From: Penicillus capitatus
Lineage: Eukaryota > Plantae > Chlorophyta
Assembly (NCBI GenBank): GCA_965649825.1
Contig: OZ287695.1
Coordinates: 124,001-188,000, forward strand
DNA: 64,000 nt
Direction: 5' to 3'
The notes under the pieces were generated by a model. It made no database searches. It was not told where the DNA came from and saw nothing but the letters and a program-made list of their open reading frames with translations. Positions 25,978 through 64,000 of this stretch are shown piece by piece. Made by a program: the position numbers and the translations under genes. Each line of letters opens with the position of its first letter. Position 1 is the first letter of the stretch.

Positions 25978-28837
25978 TCATGGTGAGAGTAAGCTAACAA
26001 GGGCAGCTTGCATTTCATAGGTGCAATCCGCAGCAAAAGAATCACAGATAACATGTAAAGGCATCAACCCGTCCCTATTGGTTATCGATTTCGACGCTCC
26101 GGCGTCGGACAATGCCTAAACAGCCATCCCACCACGCCGTGAGAATCGCACTCGTGGATAAAGTGAGAGATGACCTGCACGACACTGACGTGACCTTTAC
26201 TCGCCGCCAGATGCAACGGAGTCCACCCATAGCTCGTCGCGGCATCTATGTCAGCACCATGAGAAATAAGTATCTGAGAACATCGACTTTAGCGCAGCTC
26301 AGGGGCACGATCTAGAGACGGACTTTCACACTCTGAAGGTGTCCTCCATCGGCAGCGAAATGAAGCGATGACCACAGTAATTGATCTGTCGCGTCGATAT
26401 CGGCATCGTGTGCAATCAGGGCCTAAGAAGAGACGTCACATCAAATCGTCTCGCCGGATGAAAGAGAGAGGCTCATCACCTTCATGACATCGAAGTGTCC
26501 TTCTCCGGCCGCTTCGTGTAGTGCCGATCTTTTGTTGATGTCGAGCTTGTGAACATCTGCCTCGTGCGACAGAAGGACCTGAATAGACATGGCAGAATTC
26601 GGATTGCCTCTGCAAAGGGTGCTGACCTTCACGACTCCGACGTGACCTTCAGAAGACGCAAAGTGCAGTGGCGTCGACCCAGTGTCGTCAATCACATCAA
26701 CCACTGCTCCATACGCGATGAGGAACTTGAAAACACAGTCCGTCCGTCTACGTCGTGTCAAAGTGACAGATGCTGCCATACTTCGACGACATTAGGATGT
26801 CCCCCAAAACTCGCTTGGTGCAGTGGTAAGAGACCAAATCTTGTGGTGGCGTGAACATTTGCGCCAAAAATAACGAGATGCTGGCAGAAGGCAATGATAT
26901 GAGATGGAGAGGAGGGAGTGAGCACACTTTCACGATGGGCAAATCTCCTTTGAACGATGCCATGTGCAGCGACGTCCACCGATTGAAGTCGATAGCATCC
27001 ACTTTTGCACCGGCACTCAGAAAAACCTACACACCACACAGCACCCTTTCAAGCTTCTCATGCCGAAGAAAGTCTCGTTAAGAGGAAGCTACGGTTAGAA
27101 TTGGGGAACAGGAACAGTTGGCTAAAGTAGAGTGACATCCAAAAAGCCAGCCTCGTTGGTGATGTGGCCTCAGACATTGCTCTTAGGTCATGTGGTGGCG
27201 CACGTACCTTTACTGCAGGTCTGGATCCACAGAGAACAGCAGCATGTAGGGGGGTTAGCTTCTTGGCATTAGTCCATTCCAAGGTGGCCTCATGCTCCAA
27301 AAACACCTGCATGCCACAAAGTCATGTAGATGGACTGCACGAAGTCAGCATTCGGTGAGACCTTGGCGCATTTTGTGGCATCAAAGCAAGCAGCCCAGTG
27401 CAGCAGCGTAGAATTTTTTACCAAAGGATAGTCACGAAGCCGTGTGTTGTGATAGGTGGTGTCAATATCTAGACCGTCTGAGAGAATGGCCTCGGCCTCG
27501 ACTCCATTGTCCGAACGAATCGCATTGATCATTTTCTGCACATCTCTCTTTGTAACGAAGCGATCGCACAGATGGACATGTGCACACCTGGAGGAGATCC
27601 TTATTCGACGCTTTCTTAACTCCGGGATCTTTCTCAGGCAATCTTGCCGTCTTGGGTCCCCTCACAGTGTCGTCCTTCGCAGATTCAGGTGTCTTGTCCT
27701 CTCCTTTATGCTTAGAAGAGGGTTCCTGCATACAAGGCATGGTTCAGTCGTCCATGATGGGGATGATGCACCTTGAGTTCTGCATCTGTCAAGTTTGTAA
27801 TCCAAGAAAGGAAAAACTCTACGCTAGTGTACAATCCAGGGAGTGTTGTTGCATTGCTCTCATCTGTGTTAATGGATGGAATGCCAACCAGGCGGTCCCT
27901 ACGTGGAGATCCTTCTGAGATATTCCCGTCCGGGGCATCAGCTATCAGCAAAGGAGCTCCAAAATGACCTAAGCGACCGAGGCATCCGCAAATGGTCTGT
28001 AAGAGAAAAGGGGTCGTCCTACATGACGGACTCTTTCTATCTTGGAGCTCAGCACAGATACTCCGTCCTTTTCTGGCATGCCCGTGGTGTTTTTTGCAGT
28101 CTGAATGCTTCAACACTTGCATTTCTGGTGAAATTTTCATCCCCCCATAAAAGTCTTTCCCAGCACTGTCCATTTTCCAGTCGATCGCGATAAGGACTTC
28201 ACGAGCACGGGACCGCCATCCTCGTGTATGCATCTTCGGCAGAGTGAGGTTCGCTGCCCGATCCAATTTCAGCAAAGCAACATCGTACCCGTCTTCAGTT
28301 TTACCCGTCCAGTGGTCATGCAGATGCACGGCCTTAGTAACGAATGCCTTGAACAACGACACGTCTTGTACATTTGTCACATCGATGGAGCACGACCCCT
28401 TTCATGTTCTTAGTTCCGTTGACATCCATGCCGCAAAGGACAAGTGGTGGAGTTCTTTTGAAACTCGACGGTTCAGCATCCAGACAGTGAGCAGACGTGA
28501 GCACCCACTTCGGTCGAATCAATGTCCCGCTGCATTTTCGCTTCTTCGTCTTTCCGCTGTGAATCGAACAAACAAAAGGAAATCGATTCTCCGCGACTCT
28601 CGTCCAGTTCTGTGCACCACAGCGAAAAACACGCACTCTGGCAACATCCGCCTTACGATGCCTCACCTGACAATGCGTTTCTGAGGCGGATTTAAGAACT
28701 TCGCCTCGGAGATGTTCTGCACGAAGAGTTCAGAAGAGGTAGGGAGGGAAAGGAGGATTGCTTTGTCTGCCGTGGGCCGATTGTAATGCGGCGAACAGTA
28801 AAACGAAGACGGTGGTTACGAAGTGTGCTTTCTGCAT
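25978..28837 (-). CDS. Gene A: signal peptide, S1 protease-like domain (catalytic Ser replaced), linker, ankyrin array (7 repeat exons)
   Basis: MQKAHFVTTVFVLLFAALQSAHG; WVLTSAHC; GYDVALL; HFGAP where GDSGGP is expected; cap exon ..TLLHWAACFDATKCAK; seven 33-aa exons; terminal GLMPLHVICDSFAADC..LLSP*. Confidence 0.82.
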
Positions 28838-31169: not shown

Positions 31170-33670
31170 TCAAAGCCAAAGTCCGTGGATGGCGACTGTC
31201 GCCGAACAATAAACCAAAAAACAAAAGCCAATACATGTGACAGAAACAAACACAAATCCCTTGACCCCTCCCCAAATGACGACACCGAACAGTAATAGAG
31301 AGCAAAAAAGAAAGCCACCCACTACAATCAATGCTACGATCTTAATTTTGTCACAGTCGCAGGAGCCAATGCTACAGTTATACAAGATAGTTCCGATGAT
31401 GATCAAACCGCATCCTCCAAGTACACATCCTACGCCAAGGGCAATGTTCATGTCACACCATCCACCAAAATGAGATGCGCATCTGACAAGCCACCGCTCG
31501 TCGCACGCCCACCTAGTGCAGTAGTTTTTTTCCGCTTCAGTACACCGACAAACTGCCGAAGAGATCTGATAACTGGAAGAGATGTTCGCCTGCCAGACGC
31601 GACAGTACTCTCCACTCGCGTCATCAGCCGCACATTCGTAGTACTCTTCTGTATCGATCTCGCCGTTTGATTTCTGCACGCAACTCCACTTCAGACAATA
31701 ACGATCCTTCTCAGATCTCGTTTCGCACACGCAGTCTCTGTCGTCCCTCGAACAGTGCCATGACTCGCAGACAGGTGAGCCTCTTTCAGAATCACAACGA
31801 CATGCTGTGGGATCTCGATCGCCCGAGGAATGAGTGGTCTCCCATGATTGACAGCAGTCTCGGCGCTTGTGAATGCAGCGAAACTCTTCGTGGTACGATC
31901 CCCTTGCTTTCTTGTACAGACCTCCTCTGTACTTCCCGGACTCTGAGTAATATCCAGCATCTCGTTTAAGAACATTCCAGGAGGCGAGAGAAACATCGCC
32001 TCCAGCTGAAAGTTCCACTTTCTCTGTTCTGTTTTTGGAAACTTGACTTTTTGGTTGAACGGAGTTTGATGAAGAAACAGTGTCGTTGATATTGTCTTCG
32101 CGTGACGAGAGTGGCATTTCCTGCAAGGCATGGATGGTCAGAATTCGGGTTGCCTCACCTCTCTTACCTCTTCTGACGGTAGCGAATGGATCGACTGGGT
32201 AACACCATTTTTGTCCGGTGCATCATCTTCCTCCTGGAATGAAAACATCAACAAGAGAAAAGCATCATGAGCATTCGTTACTTCATCCACCAATTCGACA
32301 ATGGGTTTGAAGGTGTCTTGTGTTGAACTCCTCTGAACAGACAGGGAGATATTGTCTTCTTCTGCCGAACTCCTCTGAACAGACAGGGAGATATTGTCTT
32401 CTTCTGCCGAAGTCCTCTGAACGGACAGGGAGTCATTCTGTACACCAAGAAGTCTTTTAGGCGTCGTTTAAACATCCCCTCTATGAGCTCAAAGTGTTGC
32501 GAGCACATGTTTATCGAGCAGGCACTCTCATCAGTGAAAACGAAGCTACTAGCTACCACTAGCATAAAAAGACCGCTTTTTGTCATAGACATCTTACTTT
32601 GGTAACCTCTCCGTCGATAACACTCGTTATCCAGTCCCAAAAGTGACCGATGCGCAGGTACACACCTGGTGGGCTTCCGTCACAGTCAGTGGACCCAAAG
32701 GAAATGACGCCAACGATCAGATCGCGCTCAGGCCTTCCAGCCGGCAGGTCGCCGTTCGGCCTGTTCGGAATGAGTAACGGACCTCCAGAGTCACCTAAAC
32801 GAAGAAGAACGTAATTTGAGGCAAAGTCGGATAGAAGAGAGATATGTCTCACCTTTGCAGGTGTCTTCGTTCATCAATCCAGCACAGACCATCTGTTCGT
32901 CTATTTTGTAACCGAACCTTTCTCTGCAACTCAGAGGAGGGAGGTAGACTAGGTTCTCTGCCATCTTCAGTCGATTTGGAAACGCGCCTGTCTGTGTTCC
33001 ACCCCAACCTAGGGCGGTGAAAAGTCGCCCGTTTCTGAATTCGCCTCCCTGTCTATCGAATGCCGGGAGTGTGATGTTCGCCTTCCTGTCCAGTTTGATC
33101 ACAGCAATGTCGTATCCTCCGTTCACATCCCTTGTCCAGGAGTCATGGACGTAAGTGGCCACGCCATTGAAGGTCTAACAAACAGAAAAAGCTAAGGGCT
33201 CAGCTGTCGATTTGGCCGAGAGAACCAGTTCGGGAATATTGTCGTCAAGATCGTGTATCCCGCAGTAGACGAGAGGGTTTCTTCCGGTCGAACCGGTGTG
33301 GAAGGGATCAACGCAGTGGGCGGCCGTCACCACCCACTTCTGACGGAAGAGAATCCCTCCGCAGAAGTGGCTTTCGTCCGCTCTGTCTAGCAGACTGCAG
33401 ACGTACGGGAATCTGCCAACCGGCGCTTCTTTTTCTTTCTATCGGACAACGGGGAACACACTGACAAAGCACGTTGTCAACCGAGGTGAACTCACCGCTA
33501 TTCTCGGAACGCTGTTCGTGAAGTTGGAGCTCTTTTTTTCGCCTAGTTAACGCCGTGCGAAATTCGCAGGTTGGTACAGCTGTATGAAGTGAAATACTTG
33601 TTTGGGCGACAGACGCACCGGGACTGGATATGAATAGCACAAATATGAAATGCGTGAGTGCTCTCTTCAT
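31170..33670 (-). CDS. Gene B: signal peptide, trypsin-like S1 protease, acidic stalk, Cys-rich domain, 3 TM helices
   Basis: MKRALTHFIFVLFISS; VVTAAHC, GYDIAVI, EDTCKGDSGGP. Phase-0 exons NDSLSVQR.., EEDDAPDK.. and EMPLSSRED.. link to the 31170-32126 Cys-rich/TM ORF. The fusion is inferred from splice phase. Confidence 0.78.
32325..32437. repeat. 42-bp coding tandem repeat (~2.7 copies) in the stalk of gene B
   Basis: gaactcctctgaacagacagggagatattgtcttcttctgcc twice plus a partial copy; encodes SAEEDNISLSVQRS on the minus strand. Confidence 0.9.
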
Positions 33671-36600
33671 GTTACGTTGAGCGAAAACTTGGCGTCTGTA
33701 GATTCAACGTTTGCCGAAATGCACGAATGAAAAAGGTACTTATTTGTAAGACGCGAACTGACACACTTCTGTTCGATGACGTGTGATGTAATTTTCTCAT
33801 CTTTATCATTGCTTACAGTCGACATCTAACCCTTGGCCGTTCCTTACGGTTGGCATCTGTAACACTCTCGTTGTTGTAGAAGACGACGGCAGATATCTTT
33901 AGAGAGAATGGGAAATGTTCAAATGAGAAGTATCATGGCGGTGTTATTCGACATGTGCAGAAACGCAAGAGATGAATGCTTTCAGGCATTTAAAAGGTCC
34001 TCGAGGGTGTCTCTTTTCCTCGCGGGACACTCTGAATTCTTCGCTTCGCAGACGAGGTCCAGAGGAGTGCTTCCTTCTTCGTTTGCTGAAGACGTGGATG
34101 CACCGGCATCGACAAGCACCTAGGATTCTCGCCTCATGCCTAGAGAGAGAATGCATTCGCTATCTACCTCGACGACATCCAAGTGACCGCCATAAGATGC
34201 AAAGTGCATTGCCCTCCATCCGAATTCGTCAGCGATCTCCACATCCACACCTCTGTCAAGAAGAACCTGTCCATCGAAGCAGATGCCGATGCCGGAAAAA
34301 CGAAGTAGGTGGATAACGACTTCGACAAACTCAGTCTGGCCGTAACGTGACGCTATGTGAAGCGGAGTCTGTCCATCGTCCGATGCGGCATTGATGTCAG
34401 CACCATTGCGAGCCAGAATCTGTCGACAGACTTCTTGCGATGCGACAACCAAGTAAGACGAAGGCGGACCGTTGCAATCTGATAGTGTCCGTCGTAGGCT
34501 GCTTGATGAAGAGGACTGGATCCGGTTTCTTGGACGGCATTGACTTGTGCTCCACTCGATACGAGAGTCTGTTTGTCATATCATTGGTCATCGTTGCCCG
34601 AGAGACAGATGCAGACGGACCTTCACGATATCGAGATCGCCGTAGTACGCCGCATAGAGTAAAGGCGTCCATCCGTATTCGTCGACAGAGTTGACATCCG
34701 CCTCTTCATTTACCAGAACCTGTAGAGTGATGATGCAGAGAAGGGTTAGAAGGAAGGGAAGAGCCCGCAAACCTGAACGACTTCATGGTGTTCGTTGTAC
34801 GCGGCATAAAGCAAAGGCGTCCATTCGTATTTGTTAACGGCATTGACAGCAGCCCCACTGGCGATGAGAATCTGCCACCAAATGCTGTCTGATCTGCAGC
34901 GCGAAGAAGATGCAGATGCACCTTTGCGACATCCGCGTGTCCAAAACGTGCTGTATAGTGAAGAGGAGTCCATTTGTCTTCATCCACGGCATTAACGTCT
35001 GCACCTTCGGCTATCAAAATCTGTCCATCGATGACTCTTCTGGCGAGATCTGTAAACAGGGTGAAGATGCACCTCTGCGATATCCATGCTTCCTTGACGC
35101 GCTGCCAAGTGCAACGAAGTCACTTCATAGTCTTCAACGGCATCCACATCTTCGACTTTAGGAGCCAGAATCTGATGACAAGATTGCAATTCTTGCAAAT
35201 CGAAAAAATCGCGTTACTTCTGCGGCGCCGACGTGTCCATAGGAAGATGCGAGATGCAGCGGATTCGCGCCGCTATTCAGGGCCACGTTGACGTCAACGC
35301 CTTCCTCGACCAAGGCCTGACGAACACTTTCTTCGACCGGCGTGCTTGAATGGAAATGCGAGTTACCTTCACAATCGCAGAATGTCCGTAGCGGGAAGCC
35401 GTATGCAGCACGTTCCATCCATCCCATCTGACAGCATCGACATCTGCTCCACGGAGGATCAACATCTGCCAACAGATCTCCATTGCCTCAGTGTCAAAAC
35501 CGAGAAAGAGTGATGACCTCTGCAATGTGAGAGTGTCCGAAACGCGATGCGAGATGGAGCGGCGTCCACCCTTCGTCCTTGACCGCGTCAATATGCGCTC
35601 CGTTGCGCATGAGAATCTGTCGGCGTCGATACTCCGCTGCCTTACGCACAAGAACGATAAGGAATGACCTCCGCGATCATGAAGTGTCCGTATCGTGCCG
35701 CTTCGTGCAGAGGGGCGACTCCATTGGAATCAACGGCATTAGCATCCGCACCTCTGTTTAATAGCAGCTGCCAACAAGACCGCGTTATGGATGCATCTCA
35801 CACGATCGCGAACGCACTTTCACGATCTTAAAGTGCCCGGCGAACGAGGCGAGATGCAAGGGTGTCCAGCCGAAGTCTGTCAAAGGGTCGACGTCGATAC
35901 CTTCGTCGAGCAGAATCTGTCGGACAACTGCCGCAGTCGAGACACCAAAACGCAGCAAGGGTCACCTTTGCGATCTCCTTGTGTCCATAGCGCGCCGCCA
36001 CGTGCAGCGCCGTCCAGTCTTCGTCTGTCACGGCAGTGACATCGGCGCCAAGATCAATCAGCAGCTGCGAAAAGGTCCTCAATGTCGGCGCATGAGGCGC
36101 CATGAAAGCATAGAGCGGACAGAGACTGACCTGCACGATGTCGGTTCTGTCGTAATAGGCGGCGTAATGCAACACCGTCCACTGCTCGTAATCTGCCGCG
36201 TCAATGTCCGCTCCGTTTTCAATAAGCACCTGCGCATCGTTCGCGAAAACTCTCGTCCTGAACGACGTCGTCGGCGTACCTTTGCGACTTTGTCGTTTCC
36301 GTATTGCGCTGCCCTGTGCAGCGGCGTCGCTCCAGTATCGTCGACCGCGTTCACGTTAGCCTCGGACAATAAGAGGACCTAAGCACGTACAGTCGTACGT
36401 TCTCGCTCTGTGTGGATGCGCAAGCCAGTTTGCTCGAGAGTCGGGAAGCACGCACCCTCGCTACCGACGCGGATCCGTTGACTGCTGCTACGTGCAATGG
36501 CGTCGATCCGTCAACATTCCTTTGGCTCACCTTCGAGCCATCGTCCAACAGAATCTGCAGAACAGTCCTTTAGCCGGAAGGGAACAGGCATAGCCACATA

Positions 36601-38230
36601 AAACGCGACAGCCATTGTCACAGTCTCACCTTTGCACACTTGACTGCACCGTAAGCCGCTGTCCAATGAAGAAGAGTCGGCTGTCCTGCCAATGGATATC
36701 CTGAAAGTTCAGAGTTGTTGTAAACGGATTGGACAGGCAGGCCATCCGCGAGCACAGATCTCAGTTTCGCGCCGTTATCGTCTGCGATGGAAGAGATCGC
36801 CTCCTAGAAATACACTGTCACCCATCGATCTGTGCAAGGAATGTTAGCGGCTTACCAAGATGGACATTCCATCTTCTGTGTCCGGTGAACGGCTCCGATC
36901 TTTGATGATCATCTCTTGTGCTGTACTTACTGGAGATTCGTTCTGAAGTGAGTTGAGTGAGAGAGTGAGCACATATTGTAAAGGAAGATGTGAATAACCT
37001 TGTCGATGATATCCAAGATCCAACCCCAGAAGTAGCCAATGCTCGTGAAGGCATCAGGACTGCTTCCATCACACCTTCCTTCTCCGTTTCCAAATAAATC
37101 GATACCGACAACCAGATCCAGTTTCGGGGTTCCTTCGCTTACATTACCGTCTGGCATGCTGGGAATGATCAACGGCCCTCCCGAGTCCCCTATTAATATC
37201 ATCTCACTTTCATGAACGGCAGAGATAGAGCAGATCCGATCACCTGAACACGCCTGTTGAGTGACTTCAGGTGATTCAACGCAGATGATGTGATCTTTTG
37301 GGTGAAAGCTGAGTTGTTCTCCACATGGCTGCGACGCCAACTGGACGAGACTATTTGCCATCTGCAAGTAACGTGGGTATCGCTCGCGTCTCGTTCTTCC
37401 CCAACCCACAATTGTGAACTCCTGATCCTCATCAAAGTGGGCAATCTGATGAGCAAACAAGGGCTCCGGCAGATCGACGCTTCGGTCGAGCTCCAACAGA
37501 GCGATGTCATAACCCGACCTCGCGCGACCCTTCCAAGATTCGTGAATGTGCGTCGCTTTCGTCTTCAGTGTCTGTACAAGATGTCCGACGTCTCAAAGCT
37601 CATTCATCACACGTGGAGGCAGGCTTACGGGCACAGAGGCAGTTCGCCGACGATCGCTGAAACCACAAAGGACTGTGGGCGTTTGTTCGACCGATTCTCC
37701 TCCCTCCGGGTCGACGCAATGCGCCGCCGTAAGAATCCATTTGCTGCGAAACAGCACGCCAGTACAGGTGCTACTACTTCCTTCGACGTATGTGTACGTC
37801 AAGTGGCACACGTAAGGGAACCTCTCTTCCGGAACGCGCACTCCCTGTCCAACGCAAAAAAAACAATCAACATGCAGACAATAGTGCCAGAGTGAGATTG
37901 TTTACCCCCGCTACGTTCTGACGATAGTCTGTGGCGTTATCCGTCTCGGCAGTGCCTAACGAAGAAACGCACTCCCGTCGATACACGTCACGGTCGACGC
38001 AGAGATTACCGAAGGCTCGGTAGTGTGCTCGTATGTCTCCGAAGGACAGGTCGCAAGCGACGGCGAGGACGAGGAGTATTGCTTGTGCGAGACGGCCTCG
38101 CCCATTGAGACCGCCACGAATACCGGGCTGAGTTTGTACACTACCTCCCATTGTCGTTCCCGAACGAATCGTGTCGCAGCCGGGGTTGCACTAACAGAAG
38201 AACCGAGTCGTTCTCAAGTGGAAACAGGTG
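33660..38230. repeat. Segmental duplication, homologous to ~44920-50330
   Basis: Exons and introns are nearly identical between the two blocks; homology continues more weakly into the flanking spacers (38230-41800 vs 50330-52620). Confidence 0.92.
33982..38151 (-). CDS. Gene C: signal peptide/anchor, S1 protease (H-D-S intact), linker, ankyrin array (16 repeat exons)
   Basis: [19 protein letters not shown]; [15 protein letters not shown]; WILTAAHC; GYDIALL; QQACSGDSGGP; cap exon ..[16 protein letters not shown]; sixteen 99-nt exons (first at 36456-36554); terminal [20 protein letters not shown]. Confidence 0.88.
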
Positions 38231-40370: not shown

Positions 40371-41356
40371 TTTTTTTTTGATTGTGGGCTTTTACAACTC
40401 CTTTTTGTGAAGATCAGGAGTGGGTCTGTACATTAGGTGTGAACAAAGTATCTATGTATCACACGTGTCATCCCGGATTAAGGATGCAAGGCAGCCTGGA
40501 TTAGGAGTTGCACCAACTTCTTCCTTCTTGTCTCCACTTGGCACTGATGTCTTCTACGAACTCCGACATCTCTTTCGGAAACTGGAAAATGCACGCAGTT
40601 GAGAGCGTTCCCGGAATCTGTCGCTGGAGCTTCCTTCGTGCTTCATGAAACAAAGGGCATTCCAGTAAGAGGTGCTCTCTGTCTTCTAGCGCCGCTCCAC
40701 ATGAGCATTCCGGAGATTCGGCCAGGGCTCCAAATCTGAACAGGTATTGTTTCGAAGGGAAGTGGTTTGCTGCGAACTGCGAGAGTCTGGAAGCCTGGGC
40801 TCTCTCTAGGTATTTCCCAGGGAAGTGCCCTCGTCGGAAATTCGTCAGGTGCGCCGTCAGATGGAAGCTGGTGTTTCGCTGTTTGATGTCCTTTGCTGCC
40901 TCCTTATTCAGAAAGTGCGCGATCCGGTGCTTGATCCATGATCTGTGCGGCGGAATTCCCTTTGGGCCGCCACTGCTGTCTTCTGTGATAGCGGTTGCCC
41001 GTCTCCACTCTGACAGGGCATAGAACAGACCGGGTTTCCATTTCTGAGTTGCCCAGAAGATCGAGTGGCCATCAGTGGACCAATCGAGAAGTTCTTGTTG
41101 TATCTGGATGCCGGTTTCTGAGACGTTGGTCCAGCTTAGAGCTGCTTTCTGGATTCGGTTCGAGTCGACAATTACGACCAGGCTTTGTCTTCGATTCGGC
41201 GCTGTCGAGGTCAGCCGCTCTTTCAGGGTGCACAGGCCCTTGTACAGACCCACAAGCGTGGAGAGCTCCTCCGACGCCCAGTCTGGATCCCACCAGCTTT
41301 CACCTTGTCGGTTGTCTCCTTGAGAGAGTCCCCAGCTGGTGCCGAGGCGGTGACGG
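40371..41356 (-). mobile_element. 5'-truncated non-LTR retrotransposon (LINE ORF2 3' end: degenerate RNase H-like region plus CCHC finger)
   Basis: CSCGAALEDREHLLLECP zinc knuckle; poly(A) seen as T9 at 40371-40379; TSD atgggccagcgc(tt) at 40359 and 41357; the paralogous empty site atgggccagtgtttgc lies at ~52369. Confidence 0.92.
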
Positions 41357-41509
41357 ATGGGCCAGCGCTTGCTTTCTATGTAGCACGTGTATTGTGCAAG
41401 GATGGGTGCAAATGATGAAGGAACCTTGATTAAGCTTGCACTCACAAAAACAACAGAACAGAGGCATTGAAACCTCGATGAGAGTTTTTATTAACGCCCG
41501 TAGTGCAAG

Positions 41510-49000: not shown

Positions 49001-50255
49001 GACGGCTACGATCTTTGATGGTCATCTCTTGTGTTGAACTTGCCGGAGATTCGTTCTGAAGTGAGTTGAGAGAGAGTGAGCACATGTTCTAAAGGAAGAT
49101 GTGAATAACCTTGTCGATGATGTCTAAGATCCAACCCCAGAAGTAGCCAATGCTCGTGAAGGCACCAGGACTGCCTCCATCACACCTCCTTAGACCCCCG
49201 AATGAGTCGATACCGACAACCAGATCCAGTTTCGGTGTTCCTTCACTCACATTACCGTCTGGCATGCTGGGAATGATCAACGGCCCTCCCGAGTCCCCTA
49301 TGAATATCATCTCACTTTACGAATAGAAAGATGGAACAGATTTGATCAGACCACCTCGACAGGCTTCTTGAGTAACTTCAGGTGATTCGACGCAGACGAT
49401 GTGATCTTTTGGGTGAAAGCTGAGTTGTTCTCCACATGGCTGCGGCGCCAACTGGACGAGACTAGTGGCCATCTGCAAGTAACGTGGGTATCGCTCGCGT
49501 CTCGTTCTTCCCCAACCCACAAATGTAAACTCCTGATCCTCATCGAAATTGGCAGTCTGTTGAGCAAATAAGGGTTCCGGCAGATCGACGCTTTGGTCAA
49601 GCTCCAACAGAGCGATGTCATAACCTGACGTCGTGCTACCCTTCCAAGATTCGTGAATGTGCGTCGCTTTCGTCTTCAGTGTCTGCGCAAGATGTCCGAC
49701 GTCTCCAAGCTTATTCGTCAAACGCAGACGCTTACGGGTACAGATGCATTTTGCCGACGATCGCTGAAACCGCAAAGGACTGTAGGCGTTTGTCCGACCG
49801 GTTCTAGTCCTTCCGGGTCGACGCAATGCGCCGCCGTAATAATCCAGTTCTTGTGGAACAGCACACCAGTACAGGTGCCGCTTCCCTCCACGTCCGTGTA
49901 CGTCAAGTGACACACGTACGGAAACCTCTCTTCCGGAACGCGCACTCCCTGTCCAACGCAAAACAAACAATCAACATGCAGACAATAGTGCCAGAGTGAG
50001 ATTGTTTACCCCCGCTACGTTCTGACGATAGTCCGTGGCGTTATCCGTCTCGGCAGTGCCTAACGAAGAAACGCACTCCCGTCGATACACGGCACGGTCG
50101 GCGCAGAGATTACCGAAGGCTCGGTGGTGTGCTCGTATGTCTCCGAAGGACAGATCGCAAGCGACGGCGAGGACAAGGAGTATTGCTTGTGCGAGACGGC
50201 CTCGCCCATTGAGACCGCCACGAATACCGGGCTGAGTTTGTACACTACCTCCCAT
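46094..50255 (-). CDS. Gene E: close paralogue of gene C (S1 protease plus 16 ankyrin repeat exons)
   Basis: Same exon structure as C; WIITAAHC; GYDIALL; QEACRGDSGGP; terminal ..DTLEDLLSD*. Confidence 0.88.
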
Positions 50256-51444: not shown

Positions 51445-51564
51445 CATGATCCGTGATTTGACGAATTCCCTTGTTTTCGCTGATAAGAAACCAACTAATG
51501 GCACGTATGCGTTCTGGAATCAACAAGCAGACGACTAAGGCGTGTCCAAAACTTTGCGCAATCT

Positions 51565-52850: not shown

Positions 52851-55305
52851 TTACAGATAGAAACACACCCCGACACAGTAGAGTATAACCGGAATTGAGA
52901 GAATAATTGTCCACATGACTGAAGTCCAAACAACTCCCATGACGCCTCCCCATATCACAACACCGATTAGCCACAGACCAGCCGTGAAGCAAAAAACGCA
53001 GGGTGCAATAATCAAAGGTGCAAAGTCGCAGTTTCTGCTGTCGGCCGCCTCAGAAAAAACGATTACTACAGCCCAAATGGCAGTAAATCCTCCAAATGCA
53101 CCTCCAACGCCAAGGGCAATGCCCATGTCACACCATCCGCCAGAATGAGATCCGCATCTGACTAGCCACCGTTCATCGCAGGCCCACTCAGTGCAGTAGT
53201 TCTTTTGTGCTTCAACACATCGACAAACTGCCGAAGAGATCTGATAACTGGAAGAGATGTTTCCCTGCCACTCGAGACAATACTCTCCGCTCGAGTCATC
53301 AGCCGCACATTCGTAGTACTCTTCTGTATCGATCTCGCCATTTGATTTCTGAACGCAATTCCACCTCAGACAATAGCGATCCTTCGCAGATCTCGCTTCG
53401 CACACGCACTCTCTGTCGTCCCTCGCAGATCTCGCTTCGCACACGCACTCTCTGTCGTCCCTCGAACAGTGCCACGATTCGCAGACAGGTGAGCTTTCAG
53501 AATCACAACGACACATTGTGCGATCTCGATCGTCCGACGAATGAGTGGTCTCCCATGATAGACAGTAGTCCCGGCGCTCGTGAATGCAGCGAAACTCTTC
53601 GTGGTATGATCCTCTCGCTCTCTTATACAGTCCCCCTCTGTACATCCCGGAGTTCGAGTAGTATCCAGCATCTCGTTTGAGGATGTTCCAGGAGGTAAGA
53701 GAAACAAAGCCTCCTGCTGAGAATTTTACTTCCTCCGTTCTGTTCGACGAATCTGGACTCCCGGCTCCAACAGAGTTCGATGAAGAAACAGTGCCATCAG
53801 AATCATCTGCTTCAAGTGACGAAGGTATTCCCTGCAAGGCATAGGCAGATGGTCAGAATCGATGTTACCACATCTCTTCACCTCTTCCGACGGTTGTGAT
53901 TGAATCGACTCGGTTGCATCATCTCCATCTGGTGCACCGCCCTCCTCCTAAAAAAGCAATATCAGCAAGAGAAGAACATGGGGAGCGTTCATTACGTCGG
54001 GGCTTGCATCGACATTGGCTTCGATAGTATTTTCCGTTGAAGTCTCTTGAGCAAACGTCGAATCATTCTGTACATCAAGAAAGTCATTGGGACATGTCGT
54101 AAAGCTCTCTTGAGTTCTAAGGTGTTGTAAGCGTATGTTTATCGAATGGACACTCCTATCAGTGCAAACAAAGCAACCAGCTAACACTAGCGTGAACCGG
54201 AACCTGTCTTTTTTGTTACAAACATCTCACCTTGGCGATGTTTCCGTTAGCGACACGTGTCAACCAGTCCCAAAAGTAACCGATGCTTAGATAGACTGCT
54301 GGTGAGCTGCCGTTACAGTCTTTGGACCCAAAAGAAGTGACGCCAATGACCAGATCACGCTCTGGCCTGCCAGCCGTCAGGTTGCCATCCGGCTTGTTCG
54401 GGATGAGCAAAGGACTTCCAGAGTCACCTGAACGAAGAAAAACGTAATCTGAGTAAGTATGGGTCGGATAAGGAGAGAGCTGTAGCTCACCTTCACAGGT
54501 ATCCTCGTACATTAATCCAGCACAGATCATCTTTTCAAACTCGATGCCAAACCTTTTTCTGCAACGTTGAGGAGGAAGGTTGATCAGATTCTCTGCCATC
54601 TGCAATCGATCTGGGAACGCGCCTTTTCGGTTCCTCCCCCAACCTACGGCGGTGAACGCTTGTCCGTATATGAATTCGCCCCCTTGTCTATCGAATACAG
54701 GCAGTGTGACGTTCGCCTCCCTGTCCAGTTCGATCACAGCAATGTCGTATCCTTCATTCACATCCCCCGTCCAGGAGTCATGCATATGGGCGGCCACGCC
54801 ATTGAAGGTCTGCCAAGGAAACACGAAAAGTTAAGGAGACGACAGCGTGATTTGGGAAACGGAACCAATTCGGGAACATAGTCGTTGAGGTCGTGTATCC
54901 CGCAGTAGACGAGAGGATTTCTTCCGACTGTTCCGGAACGGGAGGGGTTAATGCAGTGGGCGGCAGTCACCACCCACTTTTGACGAAAGAGCGTCCCTCC
55001 GCAGACGTGCTTTTCGCTCACTCTGTCGAGCAGACTGCAGACGTACGGGAATCTGCCAACCGGCGCCTCCACTCCCTATTGAAAACACAACGCAAAACAC
55101 ATTGTCAAAGCGCGTTGTCAACCGAGGTAAACATACCGCTATCTTTGGAACGCTGTTCGTGAAGTTGGAGCTCTTTTTGTTCCCTGCAGCAAAAAATGTC
55201 ACTGCTTTCTTCACCAATTAGAGACGACAGACCCGGCTGAGTAACGGCCACAGGAAGTCCGATAAAAACGAGCAGCAAAACCGTTCTTGCAAGTGTGAAT
55301 CTCAT
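52851..55305 (-). CDS. Gene F: signal peptide, trypsin-like S1 protease, acidic stalk, Cys-rich domain, 3 TM helices (paralogue of B; protease nearly identical to D)
   Basis: MRFTLARTVLLLVFIGLPVAVT; VVTAAHC; GYDIAVI; EDTCEGDSGSP; phase-0 stalk exons NDSTFAQET.. and EEGGAPDG.. join the 52851-53837 ORF. Confidence 0.8.
53384..53461. repeat. 39-bp perfect in-frame tandem duplication in the Cys-rich domain of gene F
   Basis: tcgcagatctcgcttcgcacacgcactctctgtcgtccc twice, i.e. RDDRECVCEARSA twice; single copy in gene B. Confidence 0.92.
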
Positions 55306-56639: not shown

Positions 56640-59600
56640 TCAGTCCTCCAAGAGTTTCTCCAGAGCTTCTCTTGTACTCGCTGAACAGTAGACTTCTGTC
56701 GAAGTGCAAATGATATCGAAAGGAGTCTCCCATCCCTCATCCATTGAGGATGTCGAAGCACCAGCATCAACGAGGACCTGAGATATCCATTCAGTCATTA
56801 TACGAAGAAACAAGAAGGCATTTCACCTCGGCGATTTCCAGATATCCATAATGGGCTGCAAAGAATAACGCTGTTAATCCGAAACGAGCAGGAGCTTCCA
56901 CATCGGCATCGTGATCGAGCAGGAGCTAAAAAATCGATTGACAGAGAAGAGAAAGAAGTGCATGTGAAACCTGCACAATTTTCAGATGTCTGTAAATTGT
57001 CGCGGTGTGAAGGGGAGTCCTTCCGTCTGTATCAGCGGCATCAACATCAGCACCTTCGTCCAGCAGAATCTGCCAGGCATCGAGCACATGTTAATCATCG
57101 AGCAGCAGATAAGTCGACAACGCACTTCTGCGATCTCCAGATTTCCATGGAACGACGCAAAATGTAGAGCAGTTACACCAGAGTTTGTTGCCGCGTCGGG
57201 ATCGGCGCCATTCTCCAATAGAACCTTTCGAAGAAGCTCCGCGACTCATAAAACGAAACGAGAGGATGCTAAGAATCACTTTGACGATAGTCGTGTTCCC
57301 CTGACTCGTTGCTTCGTGTAATGGTGTCCATCCTTCGTTGCCTTTAGCGTTGATATCGGCACCCTCAGCGATCAATACCTGCAAATAAACTTCGATGGAT
57401 ACAGTGATCTGGAAAAACGGCGGATGGCTGACCTCTACGATTTCCAAATGCCCAGTATAAGCCACTAAATGCAGCGAAGTTCTTCCATCACTGTTAGCGG
57501 CATCGATATTCGCTTCGTTCTTTAAGAGAACCTATTGAGGAAGTCGGTGACGGCAAGTTGCGCTTGGGAGGGATGTCATCTGACCTTCACTGTCTCCAAG
57601 TGTCCGTAGGCTGATGCGAGTATCAATGGTGTCTCCTCACGCTCCGTCTCAGCATCCACTTCGGCACCCGCATCGATCAAATCCTGTGTCGAATCATCTC
57701 TGCAGCGATGTAAAGGAAGTCCACAAGTACTTCTACGATCTCAACAAGATTGTTTAAAGCAGCAACGTGAAGTGGTGTCCGGTCGTCATTTGCGGCAGCA
57801 TCAATGTCGACGCCTTCCTTAAGCAATGCCTGTCGTACGATCGATCTTAAGACAGAAGAGTGACAACTTTAGCCGGGATTTACCTTTATGATGTTTGTGT
57901 GTTCAAAGCGCACGGCCAGGTGCAGCGAAGTCCACCCGTCTAACAGTCTAGCATCAACGTCTGCTCCTTGGCGCATCAGCATCTATAGGCCAAGGCTCTT
58001 CGGAGGAGTTCATTCGGGATGCCATGGTGTGACCTTGGCGGTTTTGATTTGGCCATAGCGCGCTGCATAATGCAGAGGCGTCCATCCTTCATCTCCGGCA
58101 GCATCAATATCTGCCCCTTCACGCACCAGAATCTGCCGAGAGCGCGTTTCTGCATCTGGAAGGGTAATGAGATGGATAACCTTGGCGATTTCGAGGTATC
58201 CTTCGCTTGCGGCCTCGTGAAGCGGCGTCCGTCCGGTTGCGTCAGCGACTTCCGCAGCCGCGCCACTCTTCAAGAGAACCTGTCAGGGAAGACGTGTTTC
58301 GAAGTTTCAATCGTGGCATTTCTGGCACACACCTTGACGATATCGAGGTGACCCGCGAAGGCGGATAGGTGTAGAGGCGTTCTTCCAAATTCTGTAACCG
58401 CGCTGATGTTCGCATCCTTGTCGATCAAAATCTGTAGTAGACAGACATCTCTGCCTTGAATGCACCGCTCATGTAAATCAGAAGCTCGCCTTTGCGATGT
58501 CTGTATGTCCATAGCGTGCTGCTGCGTGAAGGGCCGTCCATTCTTGATTGGTCACAGCGTGAATGTCCACACCACTGTCGATCAGCTCCTGCGCATCAGG
58601 TTCTTTCTCGTGAGCAACGCGCACACGGCTATATTGGCGAATGCCAGTTAACCTGTGTGATCTTGAGATGGCCATAGTAAACAGCGTGTTGCAGCACTGT
58701 CCACTGCGCCTGATCTGCTGCATCGACGTCAGCTCCATTCTCAATGAGCATCTGTGGATGATTCAATTGAGGGGCTAGGTTACACAAACTTGAAGGTGGA
58801 CCTCTAGGATGTCGACATTCCCGTACTCGGCTGCCTCATGCATCGGTGTCTCTCCGACGGCGTCAACGGCATCCACATCCGCTTTGGACTCGATCAGTTC
58901 CTGCACACAGACGATGCCGATTTAGGAGAGGAAAGAGCTTATTGTATTTTCGATGGACACGACGGACCTTTGCCACCGAAAGCGATCCATTGACCGCCGC
59001 GACGTGCAGAGGCGTCAATCCGACGCTATTCTTCGCTTTAACCTTCGCACCACGTTTCAGGAGCACCTGCAGAGAAAGGACGGAAATGAAAATGCGTGTC
59101 ACATAGGGTGAGAGGGGCAGTGGAGAGGGAGTGCGTCTGACCCTGACGATGCTGACGTCTTCTCACCTTTGCACACTTTAAAGCGTCATACGCTGCGGTC
59201 CAATGCAGTAACGTAGACTCCTTCGTCAGAGGATATCCCGACAGGAAAGAATCTTGAAAGACAGAGTGTACACGAAGGCCGTCTTCGAGTACGGTCTCCA
59301 AAGTCACATCATCGTCATCCATGATCGAGTCAATCGCATCCTGCATCCACAGAGGTCATCCCTCTTAGGTGCTTCTCAGTCAATGCATGTCACGTGCCTG
59401 AATCTGTATTCTTTGGGCGAAGTTGATCACCGTTCGACCCTCTTCTTCAAAGCCTCCTCGATTGGCACTCTCGGGACGTCCCGTCTGCGCCAAGATGCTC
59501 ATCAGGAAAGAGAAGATGGACTAGAGACTGGAATGACCTTTTCGACGGTACCCCAGATCCAGTCCAGGAAGTAAGGGACCTTTGTGTACACGTCTGGCAT

Positions 59601-60674
59601 TTGTCCGTTGCATTCTCCTCTCCCGAACGAATTGATGCCAACGATCTGATCCTTTTCTGGTCGCCCTCTCGTTATATCCCCAGCAACACTGTCTGGGATA
59701 AGTATTGGACCTCCAGAATCTCCTAAAACATTTCGCCATTCTTGCTGCACTAAGGGGGAATCCGTTCGAGCTGACCGTCACAGGTGTCCTGTGTCTGATC
59801 TGGTGATCCGGCACAGATCTCGCGGTCGTTAGTGACATGGCCAAGCATCTCGCCGCACTCCTGAGGCGACAGATAGACCAAGTCATTTGCCATCTGCAGG
59901 TAACGAGGCGCGTCGACGAATTCCGTCTGTCCCCAACCGATTGCTGTCATTTCTTGTCCGCTGCTAAACTTGACATTCCGTTTAGGAAATGCAGGCAGGG
60001 CAAGATTGAGAGGCAAATTGAGCTCAAGGACGGCAATGTCATATCCTTGCGATTGCGGCCCTGTCCATGACTCGTGCTTGTATTTGGCAATGGCATACAG
60101 CCTCTGTACACAGCACTCCATCGACTGTCCTTCTCTTATGACGTTTGGCGTCTTACCGGTACTGAAGAAATCTCTTCGAAATCACTGAAGCCGCAATGGA
60201 CCGTCGCATATTCGAAGAAAGACCAACCTCTTTCTGAATCGACGCAGTGCGCTGCCGTTACGATCCATCTCTGCTGAAACAATACTGCCGTGCAGCCAGA
60301 ACTCCCAAAGAGCGTTCCGTGTTCCAAGAAACATATGTACGGAAATCTATCCAGCGGCACCGTCGTTCCCTGTCCAGTCAACCAAGTGTGAGCCACAGAC
60401 CTTCAACGCCGAAAACGGCTGTATTGTTACTCCGTAGATGTTCGAGGTAACGCCAGGCTTCGTCGTCCTCCGCATCCCTAAAGGAATACGGTCAGCGTGT
60501 TAGACGGGGAGGTTTGTCTCGTGTGCACGCACCTTCGTTGCCGTAGGGCGTACGTGCGACGCTGAGAGACGGAAGACAGACGAACGCGAGGACAAGGAGC
60601 GTCGCTTTCGCTGTTCCGCTGTTTGTTGTCTTATTTGCCGTCGTTCGACGACCCTTTGTCTTGAGTGCGTCCAT
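56640..60674 (-). CDS. Gene G: signal peptide/anchor, S1 protease (H-D-S intact), linker, ankyrin array (15 repeat exons)
   Basis: KATLLVLAFVCLPSLSVA; SNIYGGTTVPLDRFPY; WIVTAAHC; GYDIAVL; QDTCDGDSGGP; cap exon ..[16 protein letters not shown]; fifteen 33-aa exons; terminal WETPFDIICTSTEVYC..LLED*. Confidence 0.87.
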
Positions 60675-61893: not shown

Positions 61894-64000
61894 CTAGGTC
61901 AGGAGCTGTTGAAGATCCGTTCGCGTTCTGTCGGAACAGTTACTGTCACTTGATGAACAAACAACCTGCAGTGGCGTTTTTCCTTCATTGTTCGTGGCGG
62001 ACTTGGAGGCACCAGCGTTGACGAGAGTCTAGATTTCGCAGTCAATCATCACAAAAGACCCATGCCTGATTACCTGTGCTATTTCTAAATGGCCGATGGA
62101 CGACGCTAAGTGCAGAGGAGTATAACCATCAATGGTTTTGGCTGACACATCTGCCCGATGCTCAAGAAGTGTCTGTGGAGCACAACTGCAGCTAACTCGG
62201 GACAATGGCATTATGATTCACCTTTACTAAATCCAAGTGTTCATAACGGGATGCGTGGTGCAGGGGAGTCCATCCACGATCATTCGCGGCATTGACTTTT
62301 GCGCCATTGCGGAGCAAAACCTTCAGACAGAACCCTTTAGTCAGGACATCTGCATAGTCAAGAGAACCTTTGCAGCATCAAGGCGTCCTTTATTTGCTGC
62401 TTCATGCAAGGGAGTCCAACCAATGTTGTCAACCGCATTCACGTTGGCTCGGTGGTTTTCACACAGAAGCTGTGCGAAGAACACACGTTGATAGGCGACT
62501 TAGAAACAAAGGAATCACGAACAGGTTACCTTCACAATGTCAGCATGGTCGAATCTAGAAGCAAAGAAGACAGGTGTCCGTCTATCGACATCCACTGCTT
62601 CCACCCCTGCTCCATTTGCAATGAGAACCTGATGTGTCTCATCGCATAAGAGTGCTACTGGGACAACTTAATTCCTCACTTCTGCAACTTGATGGTGGCC
62701 GAAACCAGCTGCTTTGTGCAAGGACGTCGCTCGAATTGAATCTACTGAATTTACGTTGGCATTCGATTCCAACAGAAACTAAACCACAAGGCATTAAGAT
62801 GGCAATGTACTCTTGCTGGTTTGGTGGAAAAGCTTGTTAGCAGCATACCCTGGTAACGTGGATTGATCCTTCTACTGCTGCCACGATCAACGGCGTCGAC
62901 TGAACGGCGTTTCTGCTATCAACTTTTGCTCCGTGTCGGACGAGAACCTTCACATCAGCATCTGACAGTTTAGAGATCATAACCATGCAAAAATTCCGAA
63001 GGCTCATACATCAGCGCAATCTAACGCATCGTATCCGGCTGCCCAATGGAGAAGAGTCGAGTCCCTGCTTAGTGGATATCCTGACAGATTTGGGTCGTGG
63101 TAGACGGATTCGACATTGAGGCCCTCTAGTAGAACAGCTTCTAGAGTCACGTCGTCGTTATCTCGCAGACAACGAATTGCTTCCTAAAAGCAGATCTTAG
63201 AAATCATTACCGGCCACTAAAGATTTACGCTCAGGAGCTGCTGGTCTGTGAATTGCTTCATACGTTCACGCTCTTGTGCTAGGCGATCCCGTCGATTTTC
63301 ATTCTGCCATCACCATAAAGTAGTGGATAATGAGATGGCGAGAGATGTCATCGGGAACCTTAATAATCTTCGAAATCGTGTCCCAATGATGTCCGACGCT
63401 AGCGTAGACACTTGGATCTTGTAATCTGCACTGTTTTCCAAACGAAGTGATGCCGACGACCAGATCCAGTTCTGGCTTCCCTGCATTGATGTCACCGTTC
63501 GGCGCATTAGGAATCAACAAAGGACCACCAGAATCGCCTATTTGACACATCATTCGTGAATTCAACAGAAGGAAAGTGCATTCACGAGGAATACCGAAGC
63601 ACGTGCTCTGGGACTGATTCGGGGAATTGGCACAGATCATGTGTTTTTTTGGATGGAAGTCCAATGCTTTTGCACACGTATTGATCGGGGCGGAGACTAA
63701 GTTGTTCGCCATCTGCAGATAACGTGGTGCTTCTTTGTCTGTCGGTTTCTGCACCCCCCATCCAACAGCTGTGAACTTTTGACCCGCTCCAAAAGGGGAG
63801 ACTTGTCGAGCGAATGAAGGCAATGGGACGTCGACTTCTCCGTCAAGTTCGAGGACGGCGATATCGTTGCCATTGCGACTATTTCCCGTCCAGGAGCGGT
63901 GTGGATGTTTCTTTGCAGTTTTGAATCTCTATTCACCAAACGCGTTGCATTTCAGTCATTTCGCGACATGTGCACTCACTCGAACCAAATGGAGTCTTTG
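61894..64000 (-). CDS. Gene H (5'-partial): S1 protease, linker, ankyrin array (6 repeat exons)
   Basis: GNDIAVLEL; QSTCFGDSGGP; cap exon ..[16 protein letters not shown]; six repeat exons (one of 34 aa); terminal [19 protein letters not shown]. The signal peptide and His57 exons lie outside the window. Confidence 0.85.

Follow-up and report, generated by a model that had tools for sequence, protein, structure and literature searches.

This analysis concerns a 64,000-nt stretch of DNA from the green alga Penicillus capitatus (contig OZ287695.1; the whole stretch is referred to as the window) and a cluster of protease genes that it carries. The DNA is eukaryotic with a G+C content of ~50%. The part under study, positions 25978-64000 on the minus strand, contains eight co-oriented genes for S1 (trypsin) proteases arranged head to tail. 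When algal S1 proteins were used in tblastn searches, every S1 match at 25-64 kb was on the minus strand and none was on the plus strand. In five of these genes (A, C, E, G, and H), the protease is followed by an array of ankyrin (ANK) repeats, and the six-frame open reading frames (ORFs) show trypsin pieces upstream and ANK pieces downstream. The remaining three genes (B, D, and F) and an ankyrin-only gene in the window (Z) are discussed below. The original prediction, which drew attention to the cluster from the letters of the DNA, placed its start at 25978, and this position coincides exactly with the last base of the stop codon of gene A.

Introns in the window are very short (~45-80 nt) and have canonical GT-AG borders, together with a few GC-AG introns [at 58489 in G, 18633 in Z, and possibly 28761 in A]. 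The models for E, G, A, and H were curated by eye from three-frame displays. The C model was obtained by spliced alignment of E, and the B and D models by spliced alignment of F, using a BLOSUM-scored aligner. The five S1-ANK genes have a common plan: an exon for a hydrophobic N-terminus, a trypsin domain cut by three introns, a linker, an N-cap, the repeats, and a C-cap, with the 5′ part of H located off the window.

Gene A (28837..25978, 15 exons, 666 aa) encodes a signal peptide, an S1 pseudoprotease, a linker (27588-27725), an N-cap (27362-27547), seven ANK exons (26175-27306), and a C-cap (25978-26115). Its exon 1 donor (GC at 28761) is uncertain, as there is no usable GT donor after the signal peptide. 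Gene C (38151..33982, 23 exons, 984 aa) has a signal peptide or anchor, S1 exons (36999-37844), a linker (36856-36942), an N-cap (36630-36800), 16 ANK exons (34168-36554), and a C-cap (33982-34119). The same layout is found in gene E (50255..46094, 23 exons, 982 aa), where exon 1 (50010-50255) with the signal peptide or anchor is followed by S1 (49110-49948), linker (48969-49055), N-cap (48744-48914), 16 ANK exons (46280-48669), and C-cap (46094-46231). Gene G (60674..56640, 23 exons, 919 aa) starts with exons 1-2 (60431-60674, ending TAKATLLVLAFVCLPSLSVA), which encode its signal peptide or anchor, and continues with S1 (59538-60369), an 18-aa linker (59431-59484), an N-cap (59167-59340), 15 ANK exons (56827-59066, with one GC donor after 58490), and a C-cap (56640-56777). 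Gene H (>64000..61894) runs past the end of the window. The visible 491 aa cover the C-terminal two-thirds of S1 (63359-63910), a linker (63229-63303), an N-cap (63010-63183), six ANK exons (62074-62947, one of them 102 nt), and a C-cap (61894-62028).

The transition from protease to ankyrin array is built in the same way in all five genes. The last S1 exon ends in phase 0, with the encoded sequences …ELK, …IIDK, …VEK, and …IIK, in general W[IL]xxxxxK. It is followed by an intron of 46-56 nt, a linker exon of 54-138 nt, an intron of 40-90 nt, and an N-cap exon of 171-186 nt, after which the ANK exons begin. The interval between S1 and the N-cap is only ~200-230 nt and includes the linker exon, which is dedicated to this position and is in phase 0. 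The frame is continuous over 15-23 exons, and the spliced S1-ANK frame holds zero stop codons in each of the five genes. Moreover, the N-cap exons of A, C, E, G, and H have neither a start nor a signal of their own, unlike the stand-alone gene Z, which has its own signal-peptide exon. A candidate green-algal poly(A) motif, TGTAA, is positioned 119-167 nt past the stops of A, C, E, and F and is absent from the S1-ANK introns, a weak indication in the same direction. Collectively, these data confirm that the five S1-ANK genes are real, with a single frame leading from the protease into the ankyrin array. The claim of the original prediction, that five genes hold an S1 protease followed by 6-16 ANK repeats through phase-0 exons and without a stop, is thus borne out by the spliced models and by the exon scan described next.

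The ankyrin part was scanned for open segments of 99 nt, flanked by AG and G[TC], that fit the ANK profile. The scan yielded 58 minus-strand exons in the cluster [six in A, 16 in C, 16 in E, 15 in G, and five in H], with neighboring exons 45-77 nt of intron apart. Two further repeat exons were recognized by eye, one in A (27306-27208, 99 nt) and one in H (62469-62368, 102 nt), giving final totals of seven repeats in A, six in H, 16 in C, 16 in E, and 15 in G. Hence, one ankyrin repeat corresponds to one symmetric phase-0 exon, 99 nt long in all cases except the 102-nt exon in H, and as a result the gain, loss, or skipping of a single repeat would preserve the frame. Every array is framed by an N-cap exon with the motif …G-Y-P-L-x-x-x-S-T-L-L-H-W-[AT]-A…C-A-[KD] and by a C-cap exon with the motif x-L-V-x-A-G-A-S-x-S…C-x6-C…L-x-x-L-L-x-x-stop. 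The C-termini of A, C, E, G, H, and Z, as well as those of all the relatives described below, form a short L-x-x-[LI]-L-x(1-2) helix. In addition to closing the ANK stack, this helix could act as a sorting determinant, possibly a vacuolar one.

Both halves are recognized by Pfam in the models of A, E, G, and H, with Trypsin at expectation values of 4e-15 to 2e-36 and Ank families down to 1e-139 [gene E: Trypsin 3.9e-32, Ank 2.8e-139; gene G: Trypsin 1.7e-36, Ank 1.7e-137]. In these four genes, the Ank bit scores are 182-445 with 7-15 matched stretches, above the curated cut-offs, and the tandem 33-residue repeats carry the signature TPLH…GH…V..LL..GA..N [PF00023/PF12796] of the ankyrin family. 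For the Trypsin profile (PF00089, cut-off 20.6 bits), the scores are 56.8 (A), 112.3 (E), 126.5 (G), and 68.7 (H, partial), and for the neighboring genes 124.4 (B), 115.5 (D), and 110.6 (F). The alignment of the S1 domain with S1A proteases of known structure covers its entire length, the best sequence matches in the PDB being plasma kallikrein, matriptase, and hepsin.

The catalytic triad motifs (TAAHC, DIAL, and GDSGGP) are kept in C, E, G, B, D, and F. In H, Asp and Ser are present and GDSGGP is intact, while the exon with the His is off the window. Gene A retains H57 (TSAHC) and D102 (DVALLKLD); however, C-HFGAP replaces C-x-GDSGGP. This replacement means that Ser195 and Asp194 are lost, making A a pseudoprotease that carries a full ANK array. 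The cysteines expected to form the S1A disulfides (42-58, 168-182, and 191-220) are invariant or nearly so in the family alignment, C42, C58, and C191 among them. As read from the models, position 189 in the S1 pocket is occupied by Asp in G, B, D, and F, by Glu in E, by Gln in C, and by Ser in H. A motif resembling the [IV]-x-G-G of a mature N-terminus is recognizable: C and E have NVAGG, G has NIYGG, D and F have KIAGV, and a relative from Bryopsis has RVVGG; A is without it. The P1 residue preceding this motif is Lys or Arg in B, D, F, and Bryopsis, and Asn in C (37906-37926), E (50010-50030), and G (60431-60445), where the sites read RQN/VAGG or TSN/IYGG [the slash marks the scissile bond]. 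Asn at P1 would suit an asparaginyl endopeptidase of the legumain or vacuolar-processing-enzyme type as the activator, which is speculative.

The N-termini were judged by hydropathy and by inspection of their n-h-c layout. This layout is seen in A, C, E, and G, each of which has only one hydrophobic stretch at its N-terminus. The signal peptide of A, MQKAHFVTTVFVLLFAALQSAHG, is canonical and of the cleavable type, ending with AHG at the cleavage site. The n-regions of C, E, and G are long (20-23 residues), with positive charge ahead of the hydrophobic core and acidic residues behind it. Hydropathy of the models gave no second transmembrane (TM) segment between S1 and ANK. The proteins also carry a conserved sequon for potential glycosylation, DGN[VI]SEG. 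These features suggest that the S1-ANK proteins enter the secretory pathway and that both the S1 domain and the ankyrin solenoid are positioned on the extracytosolic side. That the four complete genes begin with a signal peptide or an anchor had been proposed beforehand, and signal-like segments are indeed present in A, C, E, and G and also in the relatives.

Evidence that the fusions are real coding sequence comes from a comparison of three gene copies. A contig from a metagenome assembly [ENA ERZ25074695 ctg339180, 1-20666] is collinear with the window at 26.6-43.3 kb with 91-100% identity; to judge from this alignment, it represents the same locus in another haplotype or strain. It also carries a Ty3/gypsy retrotransposon (RVT, RNase H, and integrase) inserted between the D-side and gene C. 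The copy of C on this contig, C′, matches C in its 23 exons and keeps an unbroken frame of 982 codons, and the frames of C, E, and C′ are all intact at 982-984 codons. Overall, the ratio of nonsynonymous to synonymous divergence (dN/dS, or omega) among the three copies is 0.35-0.40; it is lower for S1 alone (0.22-0.26) and higher for the ANK array (0.43-0.55). In addition, dN (0.042) is lower than intron divergence (0.067). The S1 half and the ANK half are both under purifying selection as coding sequence.

The same copies give an indication of how the cluster diversifies. Introns included, the DNA identity between C and E is 92.5% over 4.7 kb, and yet the two differ at residue 189 (Q versus E). 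The dS values form a mosaic along C, E, and C′, with the S1 part of E nearer C′ and its ANK array nearer C, a pattern that indicates gene conversion. At the six canonical ANK binding-surface positions omega is 1.15-1.23, compared with 0.35-0.46 elsewhere. For the three pairs, the excess at binding positions gives Fisher p-values of 0.11, 0.0096, and 0.019, and permutation p-values of 0.14, 0.06, and 0.03; faster replacement at the ANK binding surface is therefore suggestive, not conclusive. The variability of the arrays that was originally envisaged is in line with these data, as repeat number (6, 7, 15, and 16), the binding surface (omega about 1.2 versus 0.35-0.46), and residue 189 (D/E/Q/S) all vary. 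The ANK arrays are not detected as DNA tandem repeats by Tandem Repeats Finder (TRF), which picks up only the recent 151-nt units of gene D, and the repeats are therefore old. Neighbor joining of the S1 domains unites the window genes in a single clade (bootstrap 100) with A as sister to the others, and this clade contains the groups (G,(C,E)) with bootstrap 99 and (B,(D,F)) with bootstrap 100.

The architecture is not restricted to the window. In a first protein search, BSKO_04781 of Bryopsis sp. KO-2023 was found to have a signal peptide, a trypsin domain, and six ANK repeats, with an S1 domain 35% identical. A HMMER search with an S1 profile returned 118,502 S1 proteins, and the top 150 matches were mostly multi-S1 "polyserase" proteins because scores add up over the domains. 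The Pfam scan was thus limited to 48 top matches with an N-terminal S1 domain and a long tail. ANK repeats were present in 8 of the 48, which is not a frequency estimate given that the matches were selected: four further Bryopsis genes, CAD7703549.1 of Ostreobium quekettii, and three families on Logan contigs. Hence, there are at least five Bryopsis sp. KO-2023 genes of this design [BSKO_04781, 04794, 04685, 04699, and 04697; GMH36921.1, GMH36812.1, GMH36826.1, and GMH36824.1], the four further ones being located on the same 7.4-Mb contig, and at least one in O. quekettii (UniProt A0A8S1JBT6). Among the matches scanned, the S1-ANK family was seen outside the window only in Bryopsidales.

All these relatives have a signal-like start, an S1 domain, a linker, an ANK array, and a Cys-containing tail with the pattern …L..[LI]L... 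The elements of the family (signal peptide, S1A domain, hydrophilic linker, ANK array, and a C-cap with paired Cys and …L..LL..) are all found in A, C, E, and G, and H is without only the part that is off the window. Three S1 intron positions and their phases are common to the window, the Bryopsis locus, and the O. quekettii gene: one before G-x-x-x-P-x-x-RFPY, one nine codons before HE-x-W, and one in phase 1 within the Gly193 codon before DSGGP. The Bryopsis locus (BSYQ01000004.1, 10001-19082) holds two complete tandem copies of the signal peptide-S1-ANK design, at 10001-13916 and 15176-19082. The annotated range of BSKO_04781 spans both, and the public model range therefore probably merges two genes. 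In the three Logan families, the fusion is present as one uninterrupted ORF on short contigs that probably represent transcripts. One of these (P0174, 979 aa, S1 and ANK) has untranslated-region-like flanks on a 3.8-kb contig. As its genomic relatives have 9-22 introns, this intronless sequence is most likely mRNA and would provide evidence in a relative for the fusion at the transcript level. The AlphaFold2 model of BSKO_04781 shows confident S1 and ANK modules joined by a linker with pLDDT <50 and has a pTM of 0.54, which suggests that there is no fixed docking between the domains.

The window genes and the other Bryopsidales genes thus share the order of their parts and the three S1 intron positions and phases, and the Bryopsis genes also include tandem copies. 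The S1 identity, however, is only 30-37%, and there are 3-10 repeats in the relatives compared with 6-16 in the window. The tail has four cysteines (C-x-C…C…C) in the Bryopsis and Ostreobium relatives and C-x6-C in the window. Differences are also apparent in how the arrays are split: ANK exons are 99 nt in phase 0 in the window, 99 nt in phase 1 with a multi-repeat last exon in Bryopsis, and a single intronless exon in O. quekettii. The homologue in O. quekettii SAG 6.99 has introns of 300-1000 nt, compared with ~50 nt in the window, and the closest S1 domains of O. quekettii are ~30% identical to those of the window. No mention of a trypsin-ankyrin fusion was found in the literature searched, which included papers on Ostreobium, Bryopsis, Halimeda, and siphonous phylogeny. 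In this respect the earlier suggestion of an uncharacterized family holds. The architecture itself, however, is already in the public Bryopsis and O. quekettii proteomes, as unnamed proteins labeled "hypothetical" or "Peptidase S1 domain-containing". It is an uncharacterized, lineage-restricted variant of mosaic secreted serine proteases.

An expanded family of secreted and membrane-bound Peptidase S1 proteins has been reported for O. quekettii [Iha et al., bioRxiv 10.1101/2020.07.21.211367], with ~40% carrying signal peptides and 25% being membrane-bound. The sole published reading of the expansion that we found is that it serves external protein degradation, as proposed in the same paper. 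The split into soluble and membrane-bound S1 proteins mirrors the alternation in the cluster of the soluble ANK type with the TM type of genes B and F (see below). That study counts domains; ankyrin fusions, tandem clusters, and repeat-exon structure are unmentioned in it.

Among better known systems, the animal mosaic S1A proteases (CLIP, complement, clotting, matriptase, and hepsin) are alike in having an extracellular trypsin fold, the triad, disulfides, recognition modules, and tandem expansion. Their accessory modules (CLIP, CUB, EGF, kringle, SRCR, and LDLa), however, are N-terminal and have extracellular folds, whereas the module in the window genes is a C-terminal ankyrin solenoid. In the same vein, the window proteins differ from type II transmembrane serine proteases in that S1 directly follows the hydrophobic segment and the accessory module is C-terminal; SEA, LDLa, SRCR, and CUB domains gave no Pfam match in the scanned models. 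Nor do the genes belong with the CLIP-domain serine proteases, as there was no PF12032 match in any model. HtrA/DegP proteases, in which an S1C protease is followed by PDZ, have a similar order (protease and then a C-terminal protein-binding domain) and are extracytoplasmic. This is a functional analogy for a binding or regulatory domain on a tether; they have another S1 subfamily, another binding fold, and a known oligomeric cage, and, apart from the PA-clan fold, their sequences are unrelated to those of the window proteins. In the vertebrate ankyrins ANK1-3, one 33-residue repeat is encoded by one 99-bp exon, and the layout of one repeat per symmetric exon is therefore common to both. ANK1-3 are cytosolic membrane-skeleton adaptors without a signal peptide or a protease.

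Of the genes that neighbor the fusions, B (31170..33670, minus strand) encodes a signal peptide, an S1 domain of the active type, an acidic linker, Cys-rich "YCxxWxC" repeats, and 3-4 TM helices, without ANK repeats. Gene F (52854..55305, minus strand, 649 aa) has the same design. Trypsin is the only Pfam match in B and in F, and Trypsin is also matched in D. The Cys-rich domain of B and F consists of five "YCxxWxC"-like units. It has no Pfam match and no sequence match in the PDB, and its single-sequence AlphaFold2 model (pLDDT 49) is too poor to use. Gene D (42994..44928, minus strand) encodes a signal peptide and an S1 domain with GDSGSP, and its 3′ end is apparently truncated. The DNA similarity between D and F ends after the S1 part, and D apparently is without the Cys-rich/TM end. 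It holds three recent exon-plus-intron units of 151 nt [TRF: period 151, 3.6 copies, 91% matches, 43012-43557], each consisting of a 105-nt exon and a 46-nt intron and encoding an acidic 35-aa repeat, which is indicative of recent tandem duplication of exon plus intron. In B, F, and the truncated D, the ANK module is replaced at the same phase-0 boundary. Given that the out-groups in the S1 tree also carry ANK, the membrane-anchored type is probably a local offshoot, having arisen within the cluster from an S1-ANK ancestor through a swap of the C-terminal module.

Gene Z (17088..19723, plus strand, 546 aa) is located outside the cluster and has no protease. It encodes a signal peptide, a linker, an N-cap, 10 ANK exons of 99 nt, and a C-cap with C-x6-C. 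Its signal peptide, MRPLGFAVLCFITLTCPQLSA, followed by IQG, is canonical and ends with LSA. Approximately 90 hydrophilic residues separate the signal peptide from an N-cap like that of the fusion genes, and the C-cap reads VLIKSGASKKVKDEEGNTPRDVVCRFSLADCSPETSAALERLLSW up to the stop codon. Ank is the only Pfam match (293 bits). Gene Z looks like an exported ankyrin-only paralogue. The idea that C-x6-C in the C-cap is specific to the protease fusions was dropped since Z has it too; it belongs to the ANK module. The same holds for the 99-nt register, which is also used by the protease-free Z and is a feature of the ANK module rather than of the fusion.

Four other features of the window were noted. 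An Argonaute/PIWI gene (22700-25600, plus strand) has its best named relatives in chlorophyte algae, with 51-57% identity in the PIWI region, and is also present on the collinear metagenome contig; its MID region matched only itself. The PIWI matches point to a green alga but to no particular order, and the occurrence of the S1-ANK family in Bryopsidales makes a siphonous ulvophyte plausible. An ORF at 40504-41487 (minus strand, 328 aa) ends with C-x-C-G…E-x-x-x-H-L-L-x-x-C, which resembles the zinc-binding tail of ORF2 in non-LTR (long terminal repeat) retrotransposons; it has no Pfam match. At 15100-16200 (plus strand), a protein starting with MKCNACWADIEPKTRAVASTCGHLFC has a RING finger followed by a coiled coil, with only a weak zf-RING_5 match in Pfam; presumably it resembles the meiotic crossover ligase HEI10. 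Finally, the plus strand at 8353-13714 holds a very large set of ORFs, probably for one giant surface protein, in which a right-handed beta-helix/PMP-repeat region is accompanied by a Cys-rich stretch and a tail with multiple TM segments.

Taken together, we favor, with moderate confidence, a model in which each of A, C, E, G, and H constitutes a single gene for a mosaic S1A protease of the secretory pathway that carries an ankyrin solenoid as a tethered binding module. The polypeptide would enter the pathway through an N-terminal signal of the cleavable kind in A, whose counterpart in C, E, and G may, given its long n-region, be an anchor. The signal would be followed by a short pro-region, a disulfide-bonded trypsin fold, a hydrophilic linker of ~20-50 residues, an ankyrin solenoid of 8-18 repeats, and the family-specific C-cap. 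The solenoid might bring particular partners or substrates to the protease, or it might hold the protease at a site. The site of action would be outside the plasma membrane or in the lumen of the vacuole or endomembranes. Tandem duplication of genes, together with gene conversion, may have driven diversification, alongside the gain and loss of whole repeats and altered residues in the S1 pocket and on the binding surface of the ANK array. In this scenario, gene A without Ser195 would be a binding-only paralogue, and Z would export the same ANK module without a protease. As for physiology, the proteins might degrade external protein, which is what has been proposed for the expanded S1 family of Ostreobium, or they might take part in defense or wound responses.

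Several points weigh against this model. The models of the five genes are in silico, and a search of Joint Genome Institute metagenome contigs for the spliced S1-linker junction gave zero matches. The shortest intergenic gap in the cluster, between C and B, is ~315 nt, and short spacing is therefore by itself no proof of fusion. The N-termini of C, E, and G could be signal anchors instead of cleavable signals. Ankyrin arrays are normally cytosolic binding scaffolds, which is at odds with binding by an ANK array in a lumen or outside the cell. With Asn at P1 in C, E, and G, standard activation of a trypsin-type zymogen is not assured. Moreover, the ANK-surface excess is marginal, being based on few substitutions in three non-independent pairs of closely related copies. 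Four other explanations have to be considered in this context, and all of them are judged less likely than a tethered, exported protease-ankyrin protein.

One of them is that a single secretory polypeptide is made and then cut in the linker, such that the protease and a free ANK protein act separately, the latter like Z. The linkers are hydrophilic and have basic or dibasic sites [A, …KDPGVKKASNK…; E, …IKDRSR…; also H], disorder is predicted for the linker in the Bryopsis relative, and Z makes the same ANK module alone behind a signal peptide. There is, however, no cleavage motif common to the linkers, and the fact that the fusion is kept in several lineages and many paralogues suggests that physical linkage matters. 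We consider separation of the two parts improbable. A regulatory role for the solenoid has a similarly low probability. Here, it would control the protease in cis through autoinhibition or allosteric activation, or it would drive oligomerization or anchoring to the wall or matrix. The order of protease and binding domain matches that of HtrA-type proteases, for which PDZ is a precedent, conserved N- and C-caps frame every array, and the pseudoprotease A retains its array. On the other hand, the linker is predicted to be flexible and the Bryopsis model has no confident inter-domain packing; a repeat number ranging from 6 to 16 fits a fixed interface poorly, and faster change at the outward ANK positions fits variable ligands better.

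It is very unlikely that the proteins are not secretory at all, i.e., that the N-terminal stretch is non-working or is an anchor with S1-ANK facing the cytosol. The overwhelmingly cytosolic occurrence of ANK repeats and the long n-regions of C, E, and G would agree with such an arrangement. However, the charge pattern of the latter favors an N-in, C-out orientation, and A and Z have textbook cleavable signals. Moreover, an S1A domain needs its conserved disulfides and the cysteines are kept, no second TM segment intervenes between S1 and ANK, and every family member in other taxa starts signal-like. Weakest of all is the notion that the S1 genes end after the protease exon and that the ANK exons are separate downstream genes: the models are computed, genes can lie as close as ~315 nt, and retention of the post-S1 intron would lead to a stop within 6-20 codons, making an S1-only isoform possible, but we regard it as hardly tenable given that 5/5 genes hold the frame through a dedicated linker exon, that their ANK parts, unlike Z, have no start codon or signal, that TGTAA follows the stops of A, C, E, and F and never occurs in S1-ANK introns (a weak argument), and that the same architecture is annotated in O. 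quekettii and in Bryopsis, there by RNA-seq-guided prediction, and is uninterrupted on Logan contigs.

A tethered and exported protease-ankyrin protein can be taken one step further. The original prediction saw in the cluster a candidate system for recognition plus cleavage, in which a variable array would steer the protease to targets outside the cell or in the vacuole, with putative roles in immunity, microbiome control, or wound plugging. Such a system, diversifying and extracellular or vacuolar, might use the exported arrays as variable receptors for proteins that are foreign or come from damaged self. The arrays would be linked in cis to proteases that differ in specificity, and the protease-dead A and the protease-free Z would be decoys or sensors in an innate-immune or wound cascade. 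We regard this extension as a doubtful one. If true, a fold confined to the cytosol in other eukaryotes would here serve as the basis of such a cascade. Each siphonous green alga is one giant cell that has to close wounds within seconds and lives among dense bacterial communities, and Ostreobium bores into the organic matrix of skeletons. Tandem expansion, gene conversion, and variation in pocket and surface form a pattern that is typical of outward-facing proteins. The S1-ANK fusions represent a concrete and testable subset of the large Ostreobium S1 expansion, and, as Bryopsis can be cultured and a method for RNA interference has been published for it, they are tractable there.

The layout of one repeat per symmetric exon provides a clean natural case of how an array can gain or lose repeats, or be spliced in alternative ways, with its frame intact. 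What is unusual about the family is that the ankyrin module is C-terminal and that the solenoid is apparently exported, also without a protease in the case of Z. Ankyrin solenoids are among the commonest binding scaffolds in eukaryotes. If the model is true, an exported ankyrin family, with or without trypsin, would widen the known compartments of a fold that is usually treated as cytosolic, and the S1-ANK genes would represent a second route to mosaic serine proteases besides the CLIP, complement, and clotting designs of animals.

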